A stretch of DNA of 64,000 bases from Piromyces finnis finn (taxonomy: Eukaryota > Fungi > Neocallimastigomycota). Made by a program: the position numbers and the translations under genes. The DNA lies in contig MCFH01000020.1 of NCBI GenBank assembly GCA_002104945.1, positions 372,001-436,000 on the forward strand, read 5' to 3'. Below the pieces are notes generated by a model, which was given only the letters and a program-made list of their open reading frames with translations, made no database searches and was not told where the DNA came from. Shown here piece by piece: positions 23,366 to 29,755 of the stretch. Numbering within the stretch: position 1 is the stretch's first letter; every line of letters starts with the position of its first letter.

Positions 23366-23834
23366 TTTTGTTTTTGTTTTGTTTTATTTTATTTTTATTT
23401 TTATTTTCGGATTTTTACTTTTTTTTTTGTTTTATTTTGATTTACTTTGTTTTTGTTTTTTTAGTAAAATATTTTTTTATATTGAAAATTAATAAAAATT
23501 ATAAATAAATCATAAATGAAAAGACAAGTTTATAAAACTTTATATTATTATAATAAATAATTAAAAATAATCAATTATAATTTATTATTTAAAAATCGTT
23601 AATTTTCTTTTATCTTTTTTTTTTTTAATAAATAAAAATTGTTTAATTTTTAATTTTTATTACTATTGTATAAAATAATATATCATTGTTTTTTTCATTT
23701 TCTGTATTTTATTTATTTTTACCTTATTTTAAATATATTTTTTCGCTAATTTTGGATTGGTTTGATTTGGTTTTTTTACATATTTGAAAACAAATATTTA
23801 TATTTATTTTAAATAATAAGTATATTTATAATAT

Positions 23835-23950
<116 letters not shown>

Positions 23951-24319
23951 GATTAATTAATGAATTTAATGATTTGATTTTAATTAATTACAACTATTAA
24001 GTAAAAAATCATTTATTGACCAATAAAGTAAAATTAAAAACTTTAATTAATAGTTATATACAAAAATTATTTTATACATTTTATTAGAAATTAAATGACC
24101 AAATACAAAAATTGGACATATTAAAAATTTATTATATATACAATTCTTTTTTTTTTTTACAATGTTTAAAAATAAATAAATATTTTCTTTCAAAGTATTA
24201 ATATATATGTAATAATAGTACAAATAAAAAAAAAAAGAAATATATTAAAAAAGTATTAATATAACTTACATTCTTTGTAAAAATATACCCTTTTTCAGAA
24301 AAGAAGAATTCAATAAATA

Positions 24320-27300
24320 ATGAGTGCCAATTTTAGAAAAGCAATTACTGGTTTTTGTTATACAAAAAATGGTGAAATTCTAATTACAGAAAAATGTCTT
24401 TCGATACATGAAATAAAACTCAGAAACAAATATTCTGAGATTAGTAAAAAAAAAGTTAACTTAAATTCGAGTAATACCTATTTAAATGTAAAGAATAATA
24501 AAATAACCCTTAAAAAAAAAGGAGAAGAATTAATTAAAAAACAAATTGAACTCTACAATAAAAAATTAAGATTTTTCTTTGATTTTAATTTAAATGGGGA
24601 ATTTCAAACAGAAAATAAAACTACTACATTTTTAGCTAATAAATTAAAATACTTCCCGAAATTCAGAAATTTAATTGACTTTTTAATGTGTTACGTTCAA
24701 TTAAAAAATTCTATTAATGAAAAAGTCTATATAGAAGATATTGAAAATTATCTAAATAATCAAAAAATATTTTCTAAAAAAATTAGCATATATTTCAAAA
24801 GTTTAATTAGAGGATATAGAAGTTTTTTTAAGTCAACTTTAAAATCTATTTTTCAAATTAGTAGTAACAATAAAATTCAATTTTCTGATAGAGTCACTAG
24901 TAGTATAAATAATACTAAAAGAAAAATAAATGAAAAAAGTGAAAAATATAAAATAATGCAAATTAAATTAGATTTGTTTAATTATTTAAATAAAAAAAAA
25001 AGAAACACGATTTCTTATGAAGATGTTAAGATGATTATAGAAAAAAATAACATGAAAAGTAATAAAGATATTATAGAAACTGTATTAAATATAAAAGATA
25101 ATTACTTTATATTAGATAATAATGTATATAATGTAAATATGAATATTCGTAATAATATAAAAGAATATGATAATAATAAAAGTTTTATATCCCAATGTGT
25201 ATGGCTACATCCTTATTTTGAAAAATGCTTAGTAATCATTATTGATTTTCTAAAAATGCATGAATTAATAGGATCAACAAAAATTACAGTTGAATCAGCT
25301 AATAATTGGTTGTTGAATCATTACTCCCTAGATGATTCAGAAAAAGAAATAATGAAAACATTTCTTAAAGAATGCAAAGACCTTAATACATTTTTAAGTT
25401 TTGATATTAATTCTGATATATTTAAAATTGTTAAAGAGAATAATACTGAGTATGTAATCCTTCAAGCTGATTCGTTAAACAAAAATAAGATTGAATTAGA
25501 ATCATTATATCAAAAGCATCTTTTGAAAAATCAACCATTAATACTAGAACCTTATAATGATAATTTTTTACTATTAAATTACTCATACTTATCATTAAAA
25601 AAGAGCGATTGGGATGATATAGAAAGTTTCACATTAGAAATTTTTATTATATTTTTTATGGCATGTTACAAAAGTTTTGGAGTAGTATGTAATAGTCAGT
25701 TTTTATTGGAATTAATTGGAAAATACAAAATTCCAATTAAAAGTCTTACAATTAACTATCTTGAAGAATTAATATCGAAAAAAAAATATATAATAACTCA
25801 TAAAATTAAAATATCTAATAGTAAAAATTCTTCAGAAGAAATATTACGTCTATGTTTTGATAATATAAGTATGATAAAGATAAGAAGTTACACGGATGAT
25901 TACAGTAGTGATGATGATAGCGATGATTATAGCGATGATTATAGCGATGATGATAGCGATGACGATAGCGATGATAAAAATGATGATGAAAATGTTTTAA
26001 ATGATATTGAAGCCAAAAATGAATCATCAAAACTGGATAACAATGTTACTATTGAAAATAAAGAGTTTACCGAAAAAAATGATGATGATGATAATCCTAT
26101 TAATAATAATGAATTTAGCCAAGGTAATAATGAGTCTTCAAGTTTAAATTTGAATAAAACCAGTTCAATAATAAATCCAAAAATTGAACTTACGCAAGCT
26201 AACTATGATAATCAAAATCAAGGAAAAGCTTTAAGTTTACCTAGTTCACCGAAATCATATCTTAATAGTTTAGTTATAAATAATCAAGCTCAACATAATA
26301 GTAATTTACGACAACCTCCAGGCCTTGAAAATCAAAATGCCAAAAGTTTCCCTAATTCACCAAAAATAAACTTTGATGTTTCAGCTCCAAATTATCAACC
26401 TCAGGATTATAATGATTTTTATCAACCACCTCCAGGTTTCGAAAGTCAAAGCATTAAAGATTTTCCTAATTTACCAAAAGCAGACTTTGATGTTTCAGCT
26501 CCAAGTTATCAACCTCAAGATTATAATTATTTTTATCAACCACCACCAGGTTTCGAAAGTCAAAGCATTAAAGATTTTCCTAATTTACCAAAAACAGACT
26601 TTGATATTTCAGCTCCAAGTTATCAACCTCAAGATCATAATGATTTATATCAACCTCCAGGTTTCGAAAGTCAAAGTATTAATGGCTTTCCTAATTCACC
26701 AAAAACAGACCTTAATGTTTCAGCTCCAAGTTATCAACCTCAAGATCATAATAGTTTTCATCAACCTCTAGGTTTTGAAAATCAAAGCATTAATGGCTTT
26801 CCTAATTCACCAAAAACAGACCTTAATGTTTCAGCTCCAAGTTATCAACCTCTAGGTTTTGAAAATCAAAGCATTAATGGCTTTCTTAATTCACCAAAAA
26901 CAGACCTTAATGTTTCAGCTCCAAGTTATCAACCTCTAGGTTTTGAAAATCAAAGCATTAAAAGTTTTCCTAATTCGCCAAAAACAGACCTTAATGTTTC
27001 AGCTCCAAGTTATCAACCTCTAGGTTTTGAAAATCAAAGCATTAAAAGTTTTCCTAATTCGCCAAAAACAGACCTTAATGTTTCAGCTCCAAGTTATCAA
27101 CCTCTAGGTTTTGAAAATCAAAGCATTAAAAGTTTTCCTAATTCGCCAAAAACAGACCTTAATGTTTCAGCTCCAAGTTATCAACCTCAAAATTACCCTA
27201 ATAATTTTGAAGATGACGATTTTGAAGATATTTTTAAAGATGATGATGATGATGATTCTAATGAAAGTGAATCTAATTATGAAAATGAAACGTATGTAAA

Positions 27301-29755
27301 TCCGGAAATTGATGACTTATTGAAAAAAGCTGATATTCAATTTAGAAATAACAGAGGACTTTCTGAAATTTATGCCTTGGATATTATATTAGACTCAATT
27401 CTAAATATTATTATAATTTCAAGTAAAGAACTATTGAATATTAATATAGTTCCATTAGATGTTTGTGTTAAGTATATTCAAATGTTTAAAGATATTTTCG
27501 AAGATGAACTCTCTGGAAATATAATTGACGAAACCTATTTATTAAATTACATCAAACAAAGAAAAGAAAAAATTCATGAAATAATAAAAATAGATAATAA
27601 TTATATATATATAAGTTTTGCAAATGAAATAATGACTGATAAATATATACAAAAATTAGGGAATATAAATAATAAATTTAATGACAGTAATTTCAAATAT
27701 AATGTTGAACAATTAATACAAGCAATAAAAACACCAAAGATTTTAAAAGATAATCCATTAAAAGCATATATTAATAATTATATTACCTTCTTCCCAATAT
27801 ATAAAGATCTTTTCTATGATATCATTGAAATATTAATTCCGGAAGATGAAATGGCTTTAGATGTATTAGGATCAGTTATAATTAATAATTGTGATCATAA
27901 ATTTAATAAAAATTATTATCAATTCTTACTTCGTGCTTCTAATGGTATAGAATCATTTATTTTTAAAACATCAAATCATGAAAAGTTTTTTTCAAAAAAT
28001 GAAAATAATAATGTATTTATTGATCTATCTAAACTTGATAATGTAGATTATAAAAAGGAATTAAACAAAATTTTTGAAAATAATGAAGAAAATAAAAACG
28101 ATATTATTGTTATTTTACTTCTTATTTTCTTGATTTCATATGGAGAATACGATAAAAATAAAAATGAAATCTTATTATTATTGGAAGAAATCGAATTCTT
28201 TTTTGGTTATTTTACTGATATTGATTATTTACCATTAATATCAATTATCAAAGAATATAATAATGGTTTAAATTTACTAGAAGATGGATATAAACTCATT
28301 ACTTTTAAGCTTAATAATAAGGAAATGCAACCTAGTAATTTTGATTCTAAAGAAGATACTCTTCGAAACCTTTTAAATAATTTTATTTTTACTTTTAATA
28401 AATCATTAAAAGAAGAAAATATAAATGATTTTATGAAAGGGTATATTGAATATTTCCCTATTATTCAGAAATTAAAAGATAGTATAATACAATTATTACA
28501 ACCAGGTTATTACAACAGTGTAGAATATATTAACGCTAATTTAAAAAATTACATAACACAATTTGGTTTGAGTCTTTATGATTACTACACTAGCTGCTGT
28601 TCTAATAGTCTCGAAACTATTCTTGAACATGATAAAGATTTTTCATTCTATAAATTTAATGGACGCATCTACTGCAAATATAATCAAAAGTATAAGGAAA
28701 ATGAAATAAATAACATAAATAAAAAGCTTGATGATTCTATTGTTGCTATTGTCAAAGACTCATTACCAGAAGAAGAAGATTATAAGCGTTTAGAAAAATT
28801 TGAGAAGAAAATGAAAAAGATAATAATGAATGAAAAACAGTGGAAAAATTATGAATTAGAAGTACATCGTTTTGGTTCATCTAAAAATGGACTTTGGAGT
28901 AATCAAAGTGATATTGATTTATGTATTTTTGCTAATAATTCAAAAGGTCAATATATTGACATTAATATGCACAAAATTGCCCATGTTTTAAAAGTTAATG
29001 GTATGATAAATATAGAACCTATTATTCATACACGTATCCCAATTTGTAAATTTGAGGATCCAGAAACTGGCTTCAATTGTGATCTCAGTTGTAATAATCG
29101 TATTCCAATCTATAATTCTGAACTTATTGCTTGTTATATGAAATTTGATGAACGAGTTCGTGATATTGTTATGATTGTTAAAAAATGGGCAAAAGAACGC
29201 TGTATCAATAGTTCGAAAGACCGTACTTTTTCCAGTTATACTTTTGTACTCCTATGTATTGCTTATTTCCAAATAATTGATCCACCAGTTCTTCCAAATC
29301 TTCAAAATAAAATAGCTAATATTGATATGTTTGAAATTGACGTTAATGTTTCCAATAAATTACTTAATAAAAATTTATCAGGTTATTATCTTGAAAAAGT
29401 TAGATTTTATAATGACATTAAAAAAATAAGTCGATACTTTATTTCTAAAAATGAATCAAGTCGTAGAGAACTTTTACTGGGTCTTTTTAAGTTTTATGGT
29501 TGTGACTATCATTTCGAAGATGTTATATGTAACATTCGAGTCGATGGAAGTTTCGAAAAAGTTCATGATTACTTACATAATAATAAAGATTATATATTTG
29601 CCGTAAAAGATCCATTTATTAAAAAAAGAATAATTAATTGTAATTCTGGAGAAGATGAAAAGCGCCATATCATTAACGAATTTTATCGCGCTTATAACAT
29701 ATTAAAAAATACAAATGAATTAAATGCCATTTTTAAAAATGATGATATCGTTTAG
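24320..29755 (+). CDS. Giant intronless Cid1/TUT/GLD-2-family RNA nucleotidyltransferase with N-terminal winged-helix-like repeats and a central motif array
   Basis: 1811-aa open frame. The C-terminus carries FGSSKNGLWSNQSDIDLCI (DxD), HTRIPICKF, CDLSCNN (third Asp), KKWAK, FSSYTFVLLCIAYFQ..PPVLPNLQ and VKDPF, which are the pol-beta NTase plus PAP-associated domain signatures. Confidence 0.9.
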   Translation: MSANFRKAITGFCYTKNGEILITEKCLSIHEIKLRNKYSEISKKKVNLNSSNTYLNVKNNKITLKKKGEELIKKQIELYNKKLRFFFDFNLNGEFQTENKTTTFLANKLKYFPKFRNLIDFLMCYVQLKNSINEKVYIEDIENYLNNQKIFSKKISIYFKSLIRGYRSFFKSTLKSIFQISSNNKIQFSDRVTSSINNTKRKINEKSEKYKIMQIKLDLFNYLNKKKRNTISYEDVKMIIEKNNMKSNKDIIETVLNIKDNYFILDNNVYNVNMNIRNNIKEYDNNKSFISQCVWLHPYFEKCLVIIIDFLKMHELIGSTKITVESANNWLLNHYSLDDSEKEIMKTFLKECKDLNTFLSFDINSDIFKIVKENNTEYVILQADSLNKNKIELESLYQKHLLKNQPLILEPYNDNFLLLNYSYLSLKKSDWDDIESFTLEIFIIFFMACYKSFGVVCNSQFLLELIGKYKIPIKSLTINYLEELISKKKYIITHKIKISNSKNSSEEILRLCFDNISMIKIRSYTDDYSSDDDSDDYSDDYSDDDSDDDSDDKNDDENVLNDIEAKNESSKLDNNVTIENKEFTEKNDDDDNPINNNEFSQGNNESSSLNLNKTSSIINPKIELTQANYDNQNQGKALSLPSSPKSYLNSLVINNQAQHNSNLRQPPGLENQNAKSFPNSPKINFDVSAPNYQPQDYNDFYQPPPGFESQSIKDFPNLPKADFDVSAPSYQPQDYNYFYQPPPGFESQSIKDFPNLPKTDFDISAPSYQPQDHNDLYQPPGFESQSINGFPNSPKTDLNVSAPSYQPQDHNSFHQPLGFENQSINGFPNSPKTDLNVSAPSYQPLGFENQSINGFLNSPKTDLNVSAPSYQPLGFENQSIKSFPNSPKTDLNVSAPSYQPLGFENQSIKSFPNSPKTDLNVSAPSYQPLGFENQSIKSFPNSPKTDLNVSAPSYQPQNYPNNFEDDDFEDIFKDDDDDDSNESESNYENETYVNPEIDDLLKKADIQFRNNRGLSEIYALDIILDSILNIIIISSKELLNINIVPLDVCVKYIQMFKDIFEDELSGNIIDETYLLNYIKQRKEKIHEIIKIDNNYIYISFANEIMTDKYIQKLGNINNKFNDSNFKYNVEQLIQAIKTPKILKDNPLKAYINNYITFFPIYKDLFYDIIEILIPEDEMALDVLGSVIINNCDHKFNKNYYQFLLRASNGIESFIFKTSNHEKFFSKNENNNVFIDLSKLDNVDYKKELNKIFENNEENKNDIIVILLLIFLISYGEYDKNKNEILLLLEEIEFFFGYFTDIDYLPLISIIKEYNNGLNLLEDGYKLITFKLNNKEMQPSNFDSKEDTLRNLLNNFIFTFNKSLKEENINDFMKGYIEYFPIIQKLKDSIIQLLQPGYYNSVEYINANLKNYITQFGLSLYDYYTSCCSNSLETILEHDKDFSFYKFNGRIYCKYNQKYKENEINNINKKLDDSIVAIVKDSLPEEEDYKRLEKFEKKMKKIIMNEKQWKNYELEVHRFGSSKNGLWSNQSDIDLCIFANNSKGQYIDINMHKIAHVLKVNGMINIEPIIHTRIPICKFEDPETGFNCDLSCNNRIPIYNSELIACYMKFDERVRDIVMIVKKWAKERCINSSKDRTFSSYTFVLLCIAYFQIIDPPVLPNLQNKIANIDMFEIDVNVSNKLLNKNLSGYYLEKVRFYNDIKKISRYFISKNESSRRELLLGLFKFYGCDYHFEDVICNIRVDGSFEKVHDYLHNNKDYIFAVKDPFIKKRIINCNSGEDEKRHIINEFYRAYNILKNTNELNAIFKNDDIV
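26312..27187 (+). repeat. In-frame tandem repeat, 9 units (core 84 nt / 28 aa, QP[P/L]GFENQSIxxFPNSPKTDLNVSAPSY)
   Basis: Visible in both DNA and protein. Units 2-5 have an extra QPQD[Y/H]NxFY-type spacer, and the last three units are identical. Confidence 0.95.

Follow-up and report, generated by a model that had tools for sequence, protein, structure and literature searches.

The window, the whole stretch of 64,000 nucleotides of Piromyces finnis DNA that was analysed, carries on its forward strand an ATG that opens an intronless frame of 1811 codons (24320-29755), whose product comprises an N-terminal structured region, a long disordered linker with a tandem repeat array, a second structured region, and a C-terminal nucleotidyltransferase domain (Table 1). 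A low-complexity repeat lies upstream of the ORF, at 23834-23950.

Table 1. Features of the 1811-codon gene and its product, in window coordinates
Feature	Residues (aa)	Position	Strand	Basis
Whole intronless ORF, with stop	1-1811	24320..29755	+	ORF listing, translation, RNA contigs
N-terminal structured region	1-515	24320..25864	+	predicted fold
N-terminal units, about four, preceded by a small beta-rich part	~114-188, 190-281, 297-385, 436-511
Disordered S/N/D/P-rich linker	516-995	25865..27304	+	composition, orthologue alignment
Acidic tracts flanking the linker	526-556; 962-986	25895-25987; 27203-27277
Tandem repeat array	664-957	26309..27190	+	TRF, motif positions
Four PPGΦ (GYF-ligand-type) motifs	PPGL 666; PPGF 704, 742, 779	26315..26665	+
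Nine PAM2-like motifs, [LF][ND]VSAPxYQP	685, 723, 761, 798, 835, 863, 891, 919, 947	26372..27187	+
Middle array, four units	996-1460	27305..28699	+	predicted fold
Middle-array units	~1019-1100, 1161-1234, 1256-1330, 1382-1454
Cid1/CutA/URT1-type nucleotidyltransferase	1465-1805	28712..29734	+	Pfam, alignment to solved relatives, orthologues
Catalytic Asp	D1531	28910-28912	+	alignment to CutA
Catalytic Asp	D1533	28916-28918	+	alignment to CutA
Catalytic Asp	D1588	29081-29083	+	alignment to CutA
Nucleotide-recognition motif, D1764-P-F-I1767-x-x-R1770	1764-1770	R1770 at 29627-29629	+	CutA alignment

Gene structure and orthologues

At the base composition of the window (~20% G+C), 9.5% of codons should be stops, and 1811 open codons would arise by chance with a probability of ~1e-79; the other two forward frames over the ORF hold 141 and 355 stops. 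Contigs from RNA runs (labelled 'RNA?', and stored as contigs) begin at ~24211-24226, some 100 nt 5' of the ATG, and cover aa 1-313; over 24226-25900 they are 100% identical to the genome and show no intron joint. One of them extends ~560 nt beyond 25900 and reaches the repeat array, and RNA run X1 contains 0.92 of the sampled words of 24320-26200 and 0.99 of those of 27300-29700, such that the contig evidence lies on both sides of the array segment ~26460-27300. The single exon described in an earlier note on this DNA, which was made from the sequence alone, is thus supported over the parts that RNA contigs cover. The same note held that separate transcription of the nucleotidyltransferase and the upstream 4 kb would speak against its reading, and on this point the answer is partial, with both halves of the gene represented in RNA contigs but the array segment unbridged.

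The public model of the gene, BCR36DRAFT_583293 (1443 aa), begins only at M313 and lacks 56 aa of the array; 312 residues and two repeats are thus missing from it, and a correction is warranted. Taken together with the RNA contigs that do not bridge the array, this model could suggest that the long ORF is an artefact of mis-assembly or of two genes read together, and that only the 3' part, or the nucleotidyltransferase alone, is real. Such an explanation is extremely improbable in view of the length of the open frame, the RNA contigs that start before the first ATG, and the orthologues of at least four other lineages, which are full-length and intronless at 1606-1733 aa, share the order of domains and begin with a homologous N-terminus. 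A fusion of two genes in particular is ruled out by the ORF statistics and by these orthologues.

Orthologues, for which the earlier note had proposed a search, were found in about six lineages, all of them Neocallimastigomycota, with word-index searches returning 3-4 matches each. The N-terminal alignment, used in an exhaustive profile search, had three matches, again all from this phylum, no sequence relatives of aa 1-515 or aa 996-1460 were found outside it, and metagenome loci scanned with the aa 1-530 and the aa 990-1460 alignments yielded nothing. One orthologue, P0027, is without the N-terminal winged-helix array.

A Cid1-family catalytic domain

Sequence comparison supports the identification of the C-terminus as an intact Cid1-family RNA-tailing domain. 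Pfam matches are to PF22600 (3.6e-29), PF01909 (1.5e-8) and PF03828, the PAP-associated domain that follows the palm (2e-6; 28.4 bits versus a cutoff of 22.6), and the Pol-beta-type palm is present as FGSSKNG...SDIDLCI...CDLS, with its G-S motif and three catalytic aspartates. The catalytic triad, which had been read as intact from the ORF translation, proves to be so: the three full-length orthologues that were aligned all retain D1531, D1533 and D1588 without change, along with N1593, N1599 and R1770. Among solved relatives the best match is CutA, the C/U-adding enzyme of Aspergillus nidulans and Thielavia terrestris (PDB 6ywn; E 5.7e-36), followed by plant URT1 (~6e-33) and by TUT4/7 (~1e-31 to 2e-28), and the alignment to CutA and URT1 reaches residue ~1796.

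The residues that select the nucleotide have been described for CutA (E551/N554/R557) and for Cid1 (H336) (PMC7498324, PMC5689010), and a His at the H336 position makes Cid1, URT1 and TUT7 specific for U (PMC7498324). In the P. finnis protein this position is occupied by R1770, which aligns with R557 of CutA and His336 of Cid1, and the UTP-selecting His of the U-specific enzymes, Tailor included, is absent. The asparagines N397 and N403 of CutA, which contact nucleotide and primer, likewise have counterparts in N1593 and N1599, whereas E551, N554 and A400 are replaced by D1764, I1767 and P1596. The CutA-like Arg at the selectivity position makes mixed C/U/A tails more likely than pure U tails, and because this Arg replaces the U-selecting His, U specificity of the putative tailing enzyme is doubtful. 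The earlier assignment to Cid1/TUT enzymes therefore holds for the Cid1 family, but not securely for the U-specific TUT type. With R1770, an unusual type of active site that had been reported as a peculiarity of CutA is seen in a phylum of early-diverging fungi as well.

Predicted winged-helix arrays

For the two structured regions N-terminal to the catalytic domain, structure prediction gives about eight winged-helix units in all. The model of aa 990-1460 (pLDDT 78.9) consists of four helix-strand-helix-helix-hairpin units of ~80 residues, and about four such units appear in the model of aa 1-530, which is of low confidence (pLDDT 52.8). Internal repetition, already remarked on when the ORF was first read, is evident in profile-profile comparisons made by sub-blocks with six sequences, where aa 95-290 matches aa 1009-1244 with an E of 4.6e-5, and the two halves of aa 996-1460 match each other with an E of 1.8e-4; the identification of the repeated units as winged helices comes from the predicted fold only. 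With alignments of three sequences, the comparison of aa 1-530 with aa 990-1460 was not significant (E 0.26).

Known families were sought in these regions in several ways. Pfam, including OST-HTH (PF12872), gave no match in aa 1-527, 528-1027 or 1028-1460 at E values up to 10, and profile searches of the PDB with two of the array profiles found no LOTUS chain. In an array-level structure search with aa 996-1460, the LOTUS array of MARF1 accounted for the top six Swiss-Prot matches (E 7e-4 to 4e-3), which are marginal at TM-scores of 0.14-0.20. The named structural neighbours are consistently proteins of RNA metabolism with tandem winged helices, namely MARF1, OST-HTH proteins, the winged helix of Egalitarian and the ROQ domain of Roquin, the nearest of them at marginal scores. 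A feature search of the ESM Atlas placed WHD_Egal and OST-HTH among weak neighbours (score <=0.67), which serve as leads only, and a shape search of the same resource returned only unrelated bacterial proteins (TM <0.3).

MARF1 (limkain-b1) comprises an NYN nuclease, an RRM and a tandem LOTUS/OST-HTH array. As the best array-level match of aa 996-1460 it offers a parallel to the P. finnis protein, in that an enzyme modifying or cutting RNA ends is joined to a string of winged helices, but there is no sequence-level similarity between the two and MARF1 is a nuclease, not a transferase. A literature search found no fusion of LOTUS domains to a nucleotidyltransferase. TUT4 and TUT7 are also large multi-domain Cid1-family enzymes, of similar size and with related catalytic domains. 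Their extensions consist of zinc fingers and an inactive second nucleotidyltransferase module, neither of which was found in the P. finnis protein by Pfam. The idea that aa 996-1460 might be such an inactive second module was rejected in view of the predicted winged-helix fold. A report on Drosophila MARF1 describes its recruitment of CCR4-NOT (PMC6168497).

Many of the matches to single units are DNA-binding winged helices, including those of ORC/Cdc6, forkhead, MarR/PadR and RPC62 proteins, and it could be argued from these that the arrays bind DNA or chromatin and that the protein belongs with the TRAMP/Trf4-type polymerases of nuclear surveillance. This is quite improbable. The catalytic domain is far nearer to that of the cytoplasmic enzymes CutA, URT1, TUT4/7 and GLD-2 than to nuclear Trf4 (1.6e-10, as compared to 5.7e-36 for CutA), the best array-level and the best single-unit structural matches are winged helices of RNA metabolism (MARF1, LOTUS and Egalitarian), and PAM2 and PPGΦ motifs, discussed below, are ligands of cytoplasmic mRNPs.

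Short motifs in a disordered linker

The disordered central array on which the earlier note remarked occupies 26240-27188 in the DNA, where TRF detects periods of 111/114 and 84 bp. Its older part consists of four units of 37-38 aa that combine PPG[FL] with FD[VI]SAPxYQP or LNVSAPSYQP; in the young part, five units of 28 aa, encoded by 84-bp repeats that are 98% identical, combine PLGF with LNVSAPSYQP, the PPG core having been lost. The first three PAM2-like motifs read FD[VI]SAP[SN]YQP and the last six LNVSAPSYQP. The PAM2 consensus is LNxxAxEFxP, with Leu3, Asn4, Ala7, Phe10 (or Trp) and Pro12 (PMC7356810), which LNVSAPSYQP matches at L, N, A, the aromatic position and P, with Tyr in place of Phe/Trp and Ser in place of Glu. 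Its Leu-to-aromatic spacing of +7 is the same as that of the two residues critical for binding to the MLLE domain of fungal Pab1 (PMC11572963). The Pfam PAM2 family (PF07145) had no match, at E values up to 10, in the 500-aa linker or in single repeats of P. finnis and orthologues P0001 and P0003. Smy2/GIGYF-type GYF domains recognize PPGΦ, where Φ is a hydrophobic residue but not Trp and both prolines contact the domain (PMC10187677); the PPG[FL] motifs, in a proline-rich disordered context, fit this consensus, and the PLGF of the five young units fails it. What had been called an array of PAM2 and GYF ligands thus survives as PAM2-like and PPGΦ motifs that are kept in some orthologues, but with Tyr at the anchor, no match to the Pfam PAM2 family and five units outside the GYF consensus.

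Apart from these motifs, the linker cannot be aligned between orthologues; Smith-Waterman comparisons of linkers were dominated by composition and uninformative, and a motif shuffle test was used instead. One PAM2-like copy is kept in each of P0001 (LNVFAPKYTP) and P0003 (LNVLAPSYNP), and PPGΦ occurs once in P0001 and twice in both P0003 and P0027. The PAM2-like motif is absent from P0004, P0005 and P0027, and the orthologues of Pecoramyces (P0004) and Neocallimastix (P0005) have neither motif; the family can therefore perform its core function in their absence.

These absences also bear on the question of whether the enzyme is real but its linker motifs are incidental to a lineage-specific expansion of low-complexity sequence, with any targeting provided by the winged-helix arrays alone. 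Consistent with this are the lack of a Pfam PAM2 match, the Tyr at the anchor, and the youth of the array, whose copy number differs from that of the annotated protein and whose younger units have lost the PPG. Yet the 10-residue pattern and PPGΦ persist, in otherwise unalignable linkers, in orthologues that are only 41-52% identical to the P. finnis protein in folded parts, and in the shuffle test composition alone would yield a PAM2-like match with a chance of 7e-5 to 3e-4 per linker (~1e-4) and PPGΦ with a chance of ~3e-3 to 1e-2. Moreover, P. finnis and P0001 have both motifs in the same order and at similar spacing (SPKxxLNVxAPxYxPQ...PPGFE). That the motifs are incidental is accordingly regarded as rather unlikely.

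The invariable Tyr at the anchor raises a further alternative, namely that the PAM2-like array is read not by the MLLE domain of PABP but by that of another protein, for example an mRNA transporter of the Rrm4 type or a ligase of the UBR5 type. In that case the enzyme would be connected with mRNA transport or ubiquitin pathways instead of the poly(A) tail. Different MLLE domains of Ustilago recognize different PAM2 variants, with Tyr critical in PAM2L, which has an FxY core, and a PAM2 to which Tyr was added becomes readable by both MLLE domains (PMC11572963). The P. finnis motif, however, has the spacing of PAM2 (L, an aromatic seven residues on, then P) and not the acidic FxY form of PAM2L, and this alternative is clearly unlikely.

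GW182/TNRC6 proteins likewise pair PAM2 with PPGΦ in a disordered scaffold, and their PPGL motif binds the GYF domains of GIGYF (PMC10187677). The earlier comparison with a GW182-like scaffold is upheld as far as the pairing of PAM2-like and PPGΦ motifs goes, but the Argonaute-binding GW/WG repeats are absent: Trp and GW/WG number zero in the linkers of the P. finnis protein and of all five orthologues examined. A GW182-like Argonaute scaffold was rejected on this ground, and GW182, for its part, is without an enzymatic domain.

A candidate self-targeting tailing enzyme

How tailing enzymes come to act on particular RNAs is a central question of 3'-end biology. The answers so far are of two kinds: separate adaptors, namely Lin28 for TUT4/7 and GLD-3 for GLD-2, or, in URT1, a few short motifs. 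For the P. finnis protein, the reading preferred here, which is given about an even chance of being correct, is that of a catalytically competent, cytoplasmic-type terminal ribonucleotidyl transferase whose linker docks on mRNPs and whose arrays hold RNA or a partner. The two LOTUS/Egalitarian-like arrays would hold RNA, or else an RNA helicase or a decay partner, while the disordered linker between them would dock the enzyme on messenger ribonucleoproteins through its short linear motifs, the multivalent PAM2-like array binding the MLLE domain of poly(A)-binding protein and the PPGΦ motifs binding a GYF protein of the Smy2/GIGYF type. So positioned, the C-terminal domain would extend mRNAs that bear poly(A) or oligo(A) tails by short non-templated 3' additions, and tailing might thereby be coupled to repression or decay, by analogy with what has been proposed for URT1. 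The analysis itself shows the ORF and its transcription, intact catalytic residues, predicted winged-helix folds, and motifs that some orthologues keep, whereas all binding partners, the cellular location, the substrate and the added nucleotide are inferred. As the earlier note supposed, the enzyme may in this way target itself to PABP-coated mRNA; what that note observed in the sequence is confirmed, and its interpretation is partly supported.

URT1 of Arabidopsis is the nearest precedent for such wiring. It is of the same catalytic family, and its long, disordered N-terminal region has conserved short motifs that include PPGF, which is thought to bind the GIGYF-like protein EXA1, the top co-purifier of URT1 (PMC7910438). 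The likeness does not extend to the His of URT1 at the U-selectivity position, nor to its M1 (DCP5-binding) and M2 motifs, and URT1 has no described PAM2 and no folded N-terminal domains (PMC7910438), where the P. finnis protein adds about eight predicted winged-helix units and nine PAM2-like motifs. For CutA, neither winged-helix arrays nor PAM2-like or PPGΦ motifs were among the features found described. Literature searches found nothing relevant on a tailing enzyme with PAM2, and no papers on uridylation in Neocallimastigomycota. The combination of domains and motifs is limited to Neocallimastigomycota and partly foreshadowed by URT1, and the first impression of an architecture unlike any characterized protein has to be tempered in view of URT1.

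In this protein the candidate targeting devices, a PABP-ligand-like array, GYF-ligand motifs and two strings of winged helices, all reside in one chain, and each is therefore testable by deletion. Natural variants are also available for comparison, in the form of P0027, without the N-terminal array, and the Neocallimastix and Pecoramyces orthologues, without the motifs. A bolder proposal, possible but doubtful, is that the protein is a hub unlike any elsewhere, in which a multivalent and recently expanded Tyr-type PAM2 array clamps the enzyme to PABP, PPGF provides a link through a GYF protein to 4EHP-type repression, and eight LOTUS-like domains bind RNA or activate a DEAD-box helicase. If this were true, one polypeptide would unite what animals split between GW182, MARF1 and TUT4/7; and if the PPGF motifs of URT1 and the P. 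finnis protein arose independently, tailing enzymes would have become linked to GYF proteins by convergence.

Gene structure and transcription

In the extremely A+T-rich window (~13-36% G+C per kb), 9.5% of random codons of the same base composition would be stops, and an open stretch as long as the ATG-started ORF of 1811 codons would arise by chance at ~1e-79, which upholds the single long ORF claimed in the earlier note; the remaining two forward frames hold 141 and 355 stops. The public Piromyces finnis gene model, BCR36DRAFT_583293 (P0002, 1443 aa), is 100% identical to the ORF across their overlap. It starts at Met313 of the ORF, omitting window positions 24320-25255, and lacks 56 aa that correspond to two 84-bp units of the linker array (26792-26959), for a repeat number of 7 versus 9. 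The public model is probably truncated.

The locus is present in four sequencing runs of the same organism labelled 'RNA?'. In one of these, X1, the fraction of sampled words present is 0.99 for 27300-29700 and 0.92 for 24320-26200, and contigs from this run are 100% identical across 24226-24946 and then from 25018 on. In three runs examined over 23960-25900, contigs start at ~24211-24226, ~100 nt 5' of the ATG, with none on 23960-24150 and no splice joint among the contigs placed on 23960-25900; one 1444-nt contig extends ~560 nt past 25900, entering the first repeats. Thus, the 312 N-terminal residues absent from the public model are represented in RNA libraries (24226-25900), with no visible intron. 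At 24165-24245 and 24985-25101, high-depth contigs of X1, X3 and X4 match over 18-25 nt and then run on into unlike sequence; these short stretches look like A/T-rich low-complexity word matches arising from other transcripts rather than splice joints. The uninterrupted frame and the orthologues lead us to infer a single transcript, no contig bridging the array at ~26460-27300.

Features of the window and relatives of the 1811-aa window protein
Feature	Length	Position or source	Strand	Remarks
1811-aa ORF	1811 codons	24320-29755	+	
Mannosyl_trans3 glycosyltransferase ORF	544 aa	21731-23365	-	PF11051, 9.9e-41; divergent from 1811-aa ORF
Low-complexity repeat		23834-23950		intergenic, upstream of 1811-aa ORF
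Linker repeats (TRF)		26240-27188		111/114-bp units (~4.5 copies, 85-91% matches), then 84-bp units (5.1 copies, 98%)
P0001	1664 aa	metagenomes		52% identity to window protein, N-terminus
P0003	1733 aa	metagenomes		41% identity to window protein, N-terminus
P0004	1606 aa	Pecoramyces ruminantium		31% identity to window protein, aa 990-1460
P0005/P0020	1673/1683 aa	Neocallimastix		26% identity to window protein, aa 990-1460
P0027	1010 aa	metagenome		53% identity to window protein, catalytic domain

The catalytic domain

The assignment of the C-terminus to the Cid1 family holds. Pfam families PF22600 (3.6e-29), PF01909 and PF03828 match at aa 1470-1768, and the top solved relatives are CutA (5.7e-36), URT1 (~6e-33), TUT4/7, GLD-2 and Cid1, with nuclear Trf4 a much weaker relative (1.6e-10). 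Alignment to the solved relatives places the catalytic triad at D1531/D1533/D1588, and N1593/N1599 correspond to CutA N397/N403. Where the nucleotide-recognition motif of CutA is E551-P-F-N554-D-G-R557, the window protein has D1764-P-F-I1767-K-K-R1770, and D1531, D1533, D1588, N1593, N1599, D1764, I1767 and R1770 are all invariant in a three-way alignment. In Cid1, the residue aligned with R1770 is His336, which determines UTP selection, and Arg557 of CutA, with E551 and N554, underlies that enzyme's CTP preference and A-adding ability (PMC7498324; PMC5689010). Because an Arg occupies the His336 position, the window protein fails the single defining feature of U-specific enzymes, and the TUTase label given to it earlier was overstated. 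The window protein has the Arg that had been ascribed to CutA alone, although the other two CutA residues differ. Specificity is not readable from sequence, and mixed C/U/A addition would be more likely than pure uridylation.

Predicted winged-helix arrays

Outside the catalytic domain, aa 1-1460 match no Pfam family at E up to 10 save for one chance-level match, and profiles of both folded regions retrieved nothing meaningful among PDB sequences. An AlphaFold2 model of aa 990-1460, built from a 6-sequence alignment (mean pLDDT 78.9), contains four helix-(strand)-helix-helix-beta-hairpin units at model residues 30-111, 172-245, 267-341 and 393-465. The corresponding model of aa 1-530 (3 sequences) is poor overall (52.8), reaching ~80 across aa 210-380, and in this low-confidence model the same unit recurs about four times. 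Neither model has a Foldseek match in the PDB below 1e-3. The weak matches are all multi-winged-helix proteins: RPC62, Dcc1, SarS, Roquin ROQ and STK19 for aa 990-1460, and JetB/MukE, Stn1, ESCRT-II, MAGE and Egalitarian for the N-terminus.

The best named AlphaFold DB clusters are Egal-1 WH, several OST-HTH, NYN-domain, MARF1 and limkain-b1 (E 3e-4 to 2e-2), and the top six Swiss-Prot models are all MARF1, matched over the LOTUS array (E 7e-4 to 4e-3, probability 0.80-0.98). The TM-scores of the MARF1 matches are low (0.14-0.20), as expected if the units are shared but their mutual arrangement is not. By VIA-align, the middle units score against Egalitarian (7.8), Cul1 WHB (7.3) and TFIIIC eWH (7.3), and against the LOTUS domains of TDRD5 (6.7), MARF1 (6.1) and Tejas (6.0); N-terminal unit 297-385 scores against Egalitarian (8.7), TDRD5 LOTUS (8.0), Tejas (7.2), TDRD7 (7.1) and Oskar (6.0), with ORC/Cdc6 and forkhead winged helices interleaved among its matches. 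Profile-profile comparison aligns aa 95-290 with aa 1143-1237 of the middle array (E 4.6e-5) and one half of the middle array with the other (177 columns, E 1.8e-4), and a cap, Y-[FL]-P-x-[YF]-x-x-L, opens alternate units at aa ~111, 296, 1157 and 1378. Predicted folds and internal matches bear out the winged-helix repeats of the earlier note, and the profile matches support internal duplication of these units.

Linker motifs

Between the arrays lies a linker (aa 516-995) rich in S, N, D and P, with two acidic tracts. Both motif types previously read there are present: nine [LF][ND][VI]SAP[SN]YQP motifs and four PPG[FL] motifs, the latter in the older units, with PLGF in five young units. The PAM2 consensus is LNxxAxEFxP, in which the aromatic position is a main determinant and Trp is tolerated (PMC7356810); for Pab1-MLLE binding in a fungus, the critical residues are the Leu and a Phe at +7 from it (PMC11572963). 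In LNVSAPSYQP, the consensus L, N, A and P are present, Tyr fills the aromatic position, the spacing is correct and the Glu is missing; the Pfam PAM2 model does not recognise this motif. GYF domains of the Smy2/GIGYF type bind ligands of the consensus PPGΦ and require both prolines and the Gly (PMC10187677). Since PLGF has one proline, the PLGF units are probably inactive for GYF binding, and the recent array expansion multiplies the PAM2-like element only.

Among orthologues, the linker of P0001 holds ...SPKSNLNVFAPKYTPQNIQKLPPGFEDK..., that of P0003 holds ...SSLNVLAPSYNP... followed by two PPGL, and that of P0027 carries PPGL and PPGF with no PAM2-like motif. When residues of the orthologue linkers are shuffled, the PAM2 pattern arises at a rate of 7e-5 to 3e-4 per trial and PPGΦ at 2.5e-3 to 1.4e-2. 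Persistence of a motif inside otherwise unalignable linkers typically marks a functional short motif. The linkers of P0004 and P0005 have neither motif, which makes the motifs an accessory of one sub-clade. In Neocallimastix (P0005/P0020), a basic KNKAKDNGNDKN tandem repeat replaces PAM2/PPG at aa ~600-700, and an extra Ser/Asn-rich insert (aa ~1310-1390) lies just N-terminal of the catalytic domain. Each lineage has reshaped its linker independently.

Orthologues and synteny

Homologue searches recovered full-length proteins whose parts follow the order of the window protein. At loci L001/L002, a P0001-cluster protein (P0007) is encoded by an intronless ORF with a divergent Mannosyl_trans3 gene upstream. 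This neighbour is common to the window, L001/L002 and the P0027 locus (L006); the proteins are thus syntenic orthologues, and synteny of this gene pair extends across genera. In L006 (2100-6620), there is no ORF for the N-terminal array between the Mannosyl_trans3 gene and the P0027 ATG, and this lineage has the linker, middle array and enzyme only. P0027 is a natural deletion variant that lacks the N-terminal winged-helix array.

An exhaustive search of 1.84 billion representatives with the N-terminal-alignment profile returned three proteins, all from Neocallimastigomycota. In Pecoramyces ruminantium, which also has full-length P0004, a 569-aa protein (P0006) matches this profile at E 3.8e-114 and comprises just the N-terminal array, with an acidic tract at its end. 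P0006 is either an incomplete gene model or a paralogue in which the N-terminal module stands alone.

Relation to known tailing enzymes

Among characterised systems, the nearest precedent is Arabidopsis URT1, whose N-terminal disordered region carries the conserved short motifs M1, M2 and PPGF; its most enriched partner is the GYF protein EXA1, and the URT1-EXA1 link is proposed to bring the enzyme to deadenylating mRNAs (PMC7910438). The claim that the architecture has no characterised precedent therefore went too far. PAM2 is unmentioned in the URT1 paper (PMC7910438). In the literature searched, no tailing enzyme was reported to carry a PAM2 motif, and neither a LOTUS-nucleotidyltransferase fusion nor any work on uridylation in Neocallimastigomycota came up. 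The suggested likeness to GW182 survives as far as the pairing of PAM2 with PPGL, but Trp and GW repeats are absent from every linker examined, in the window protein and its orthologues.

We are highly confident of the enzyme, moderately confident of the predicted fold and less confident of the binding partners. The likeliest mechanism, to which we give an even chance, is that a CutA/URT1-type tailing enzyme would dock on mRNPs through its linker motifs and winged-helix arrays, an architecture that, as far as can be seen, is restricted to anaerobic gut fungi.
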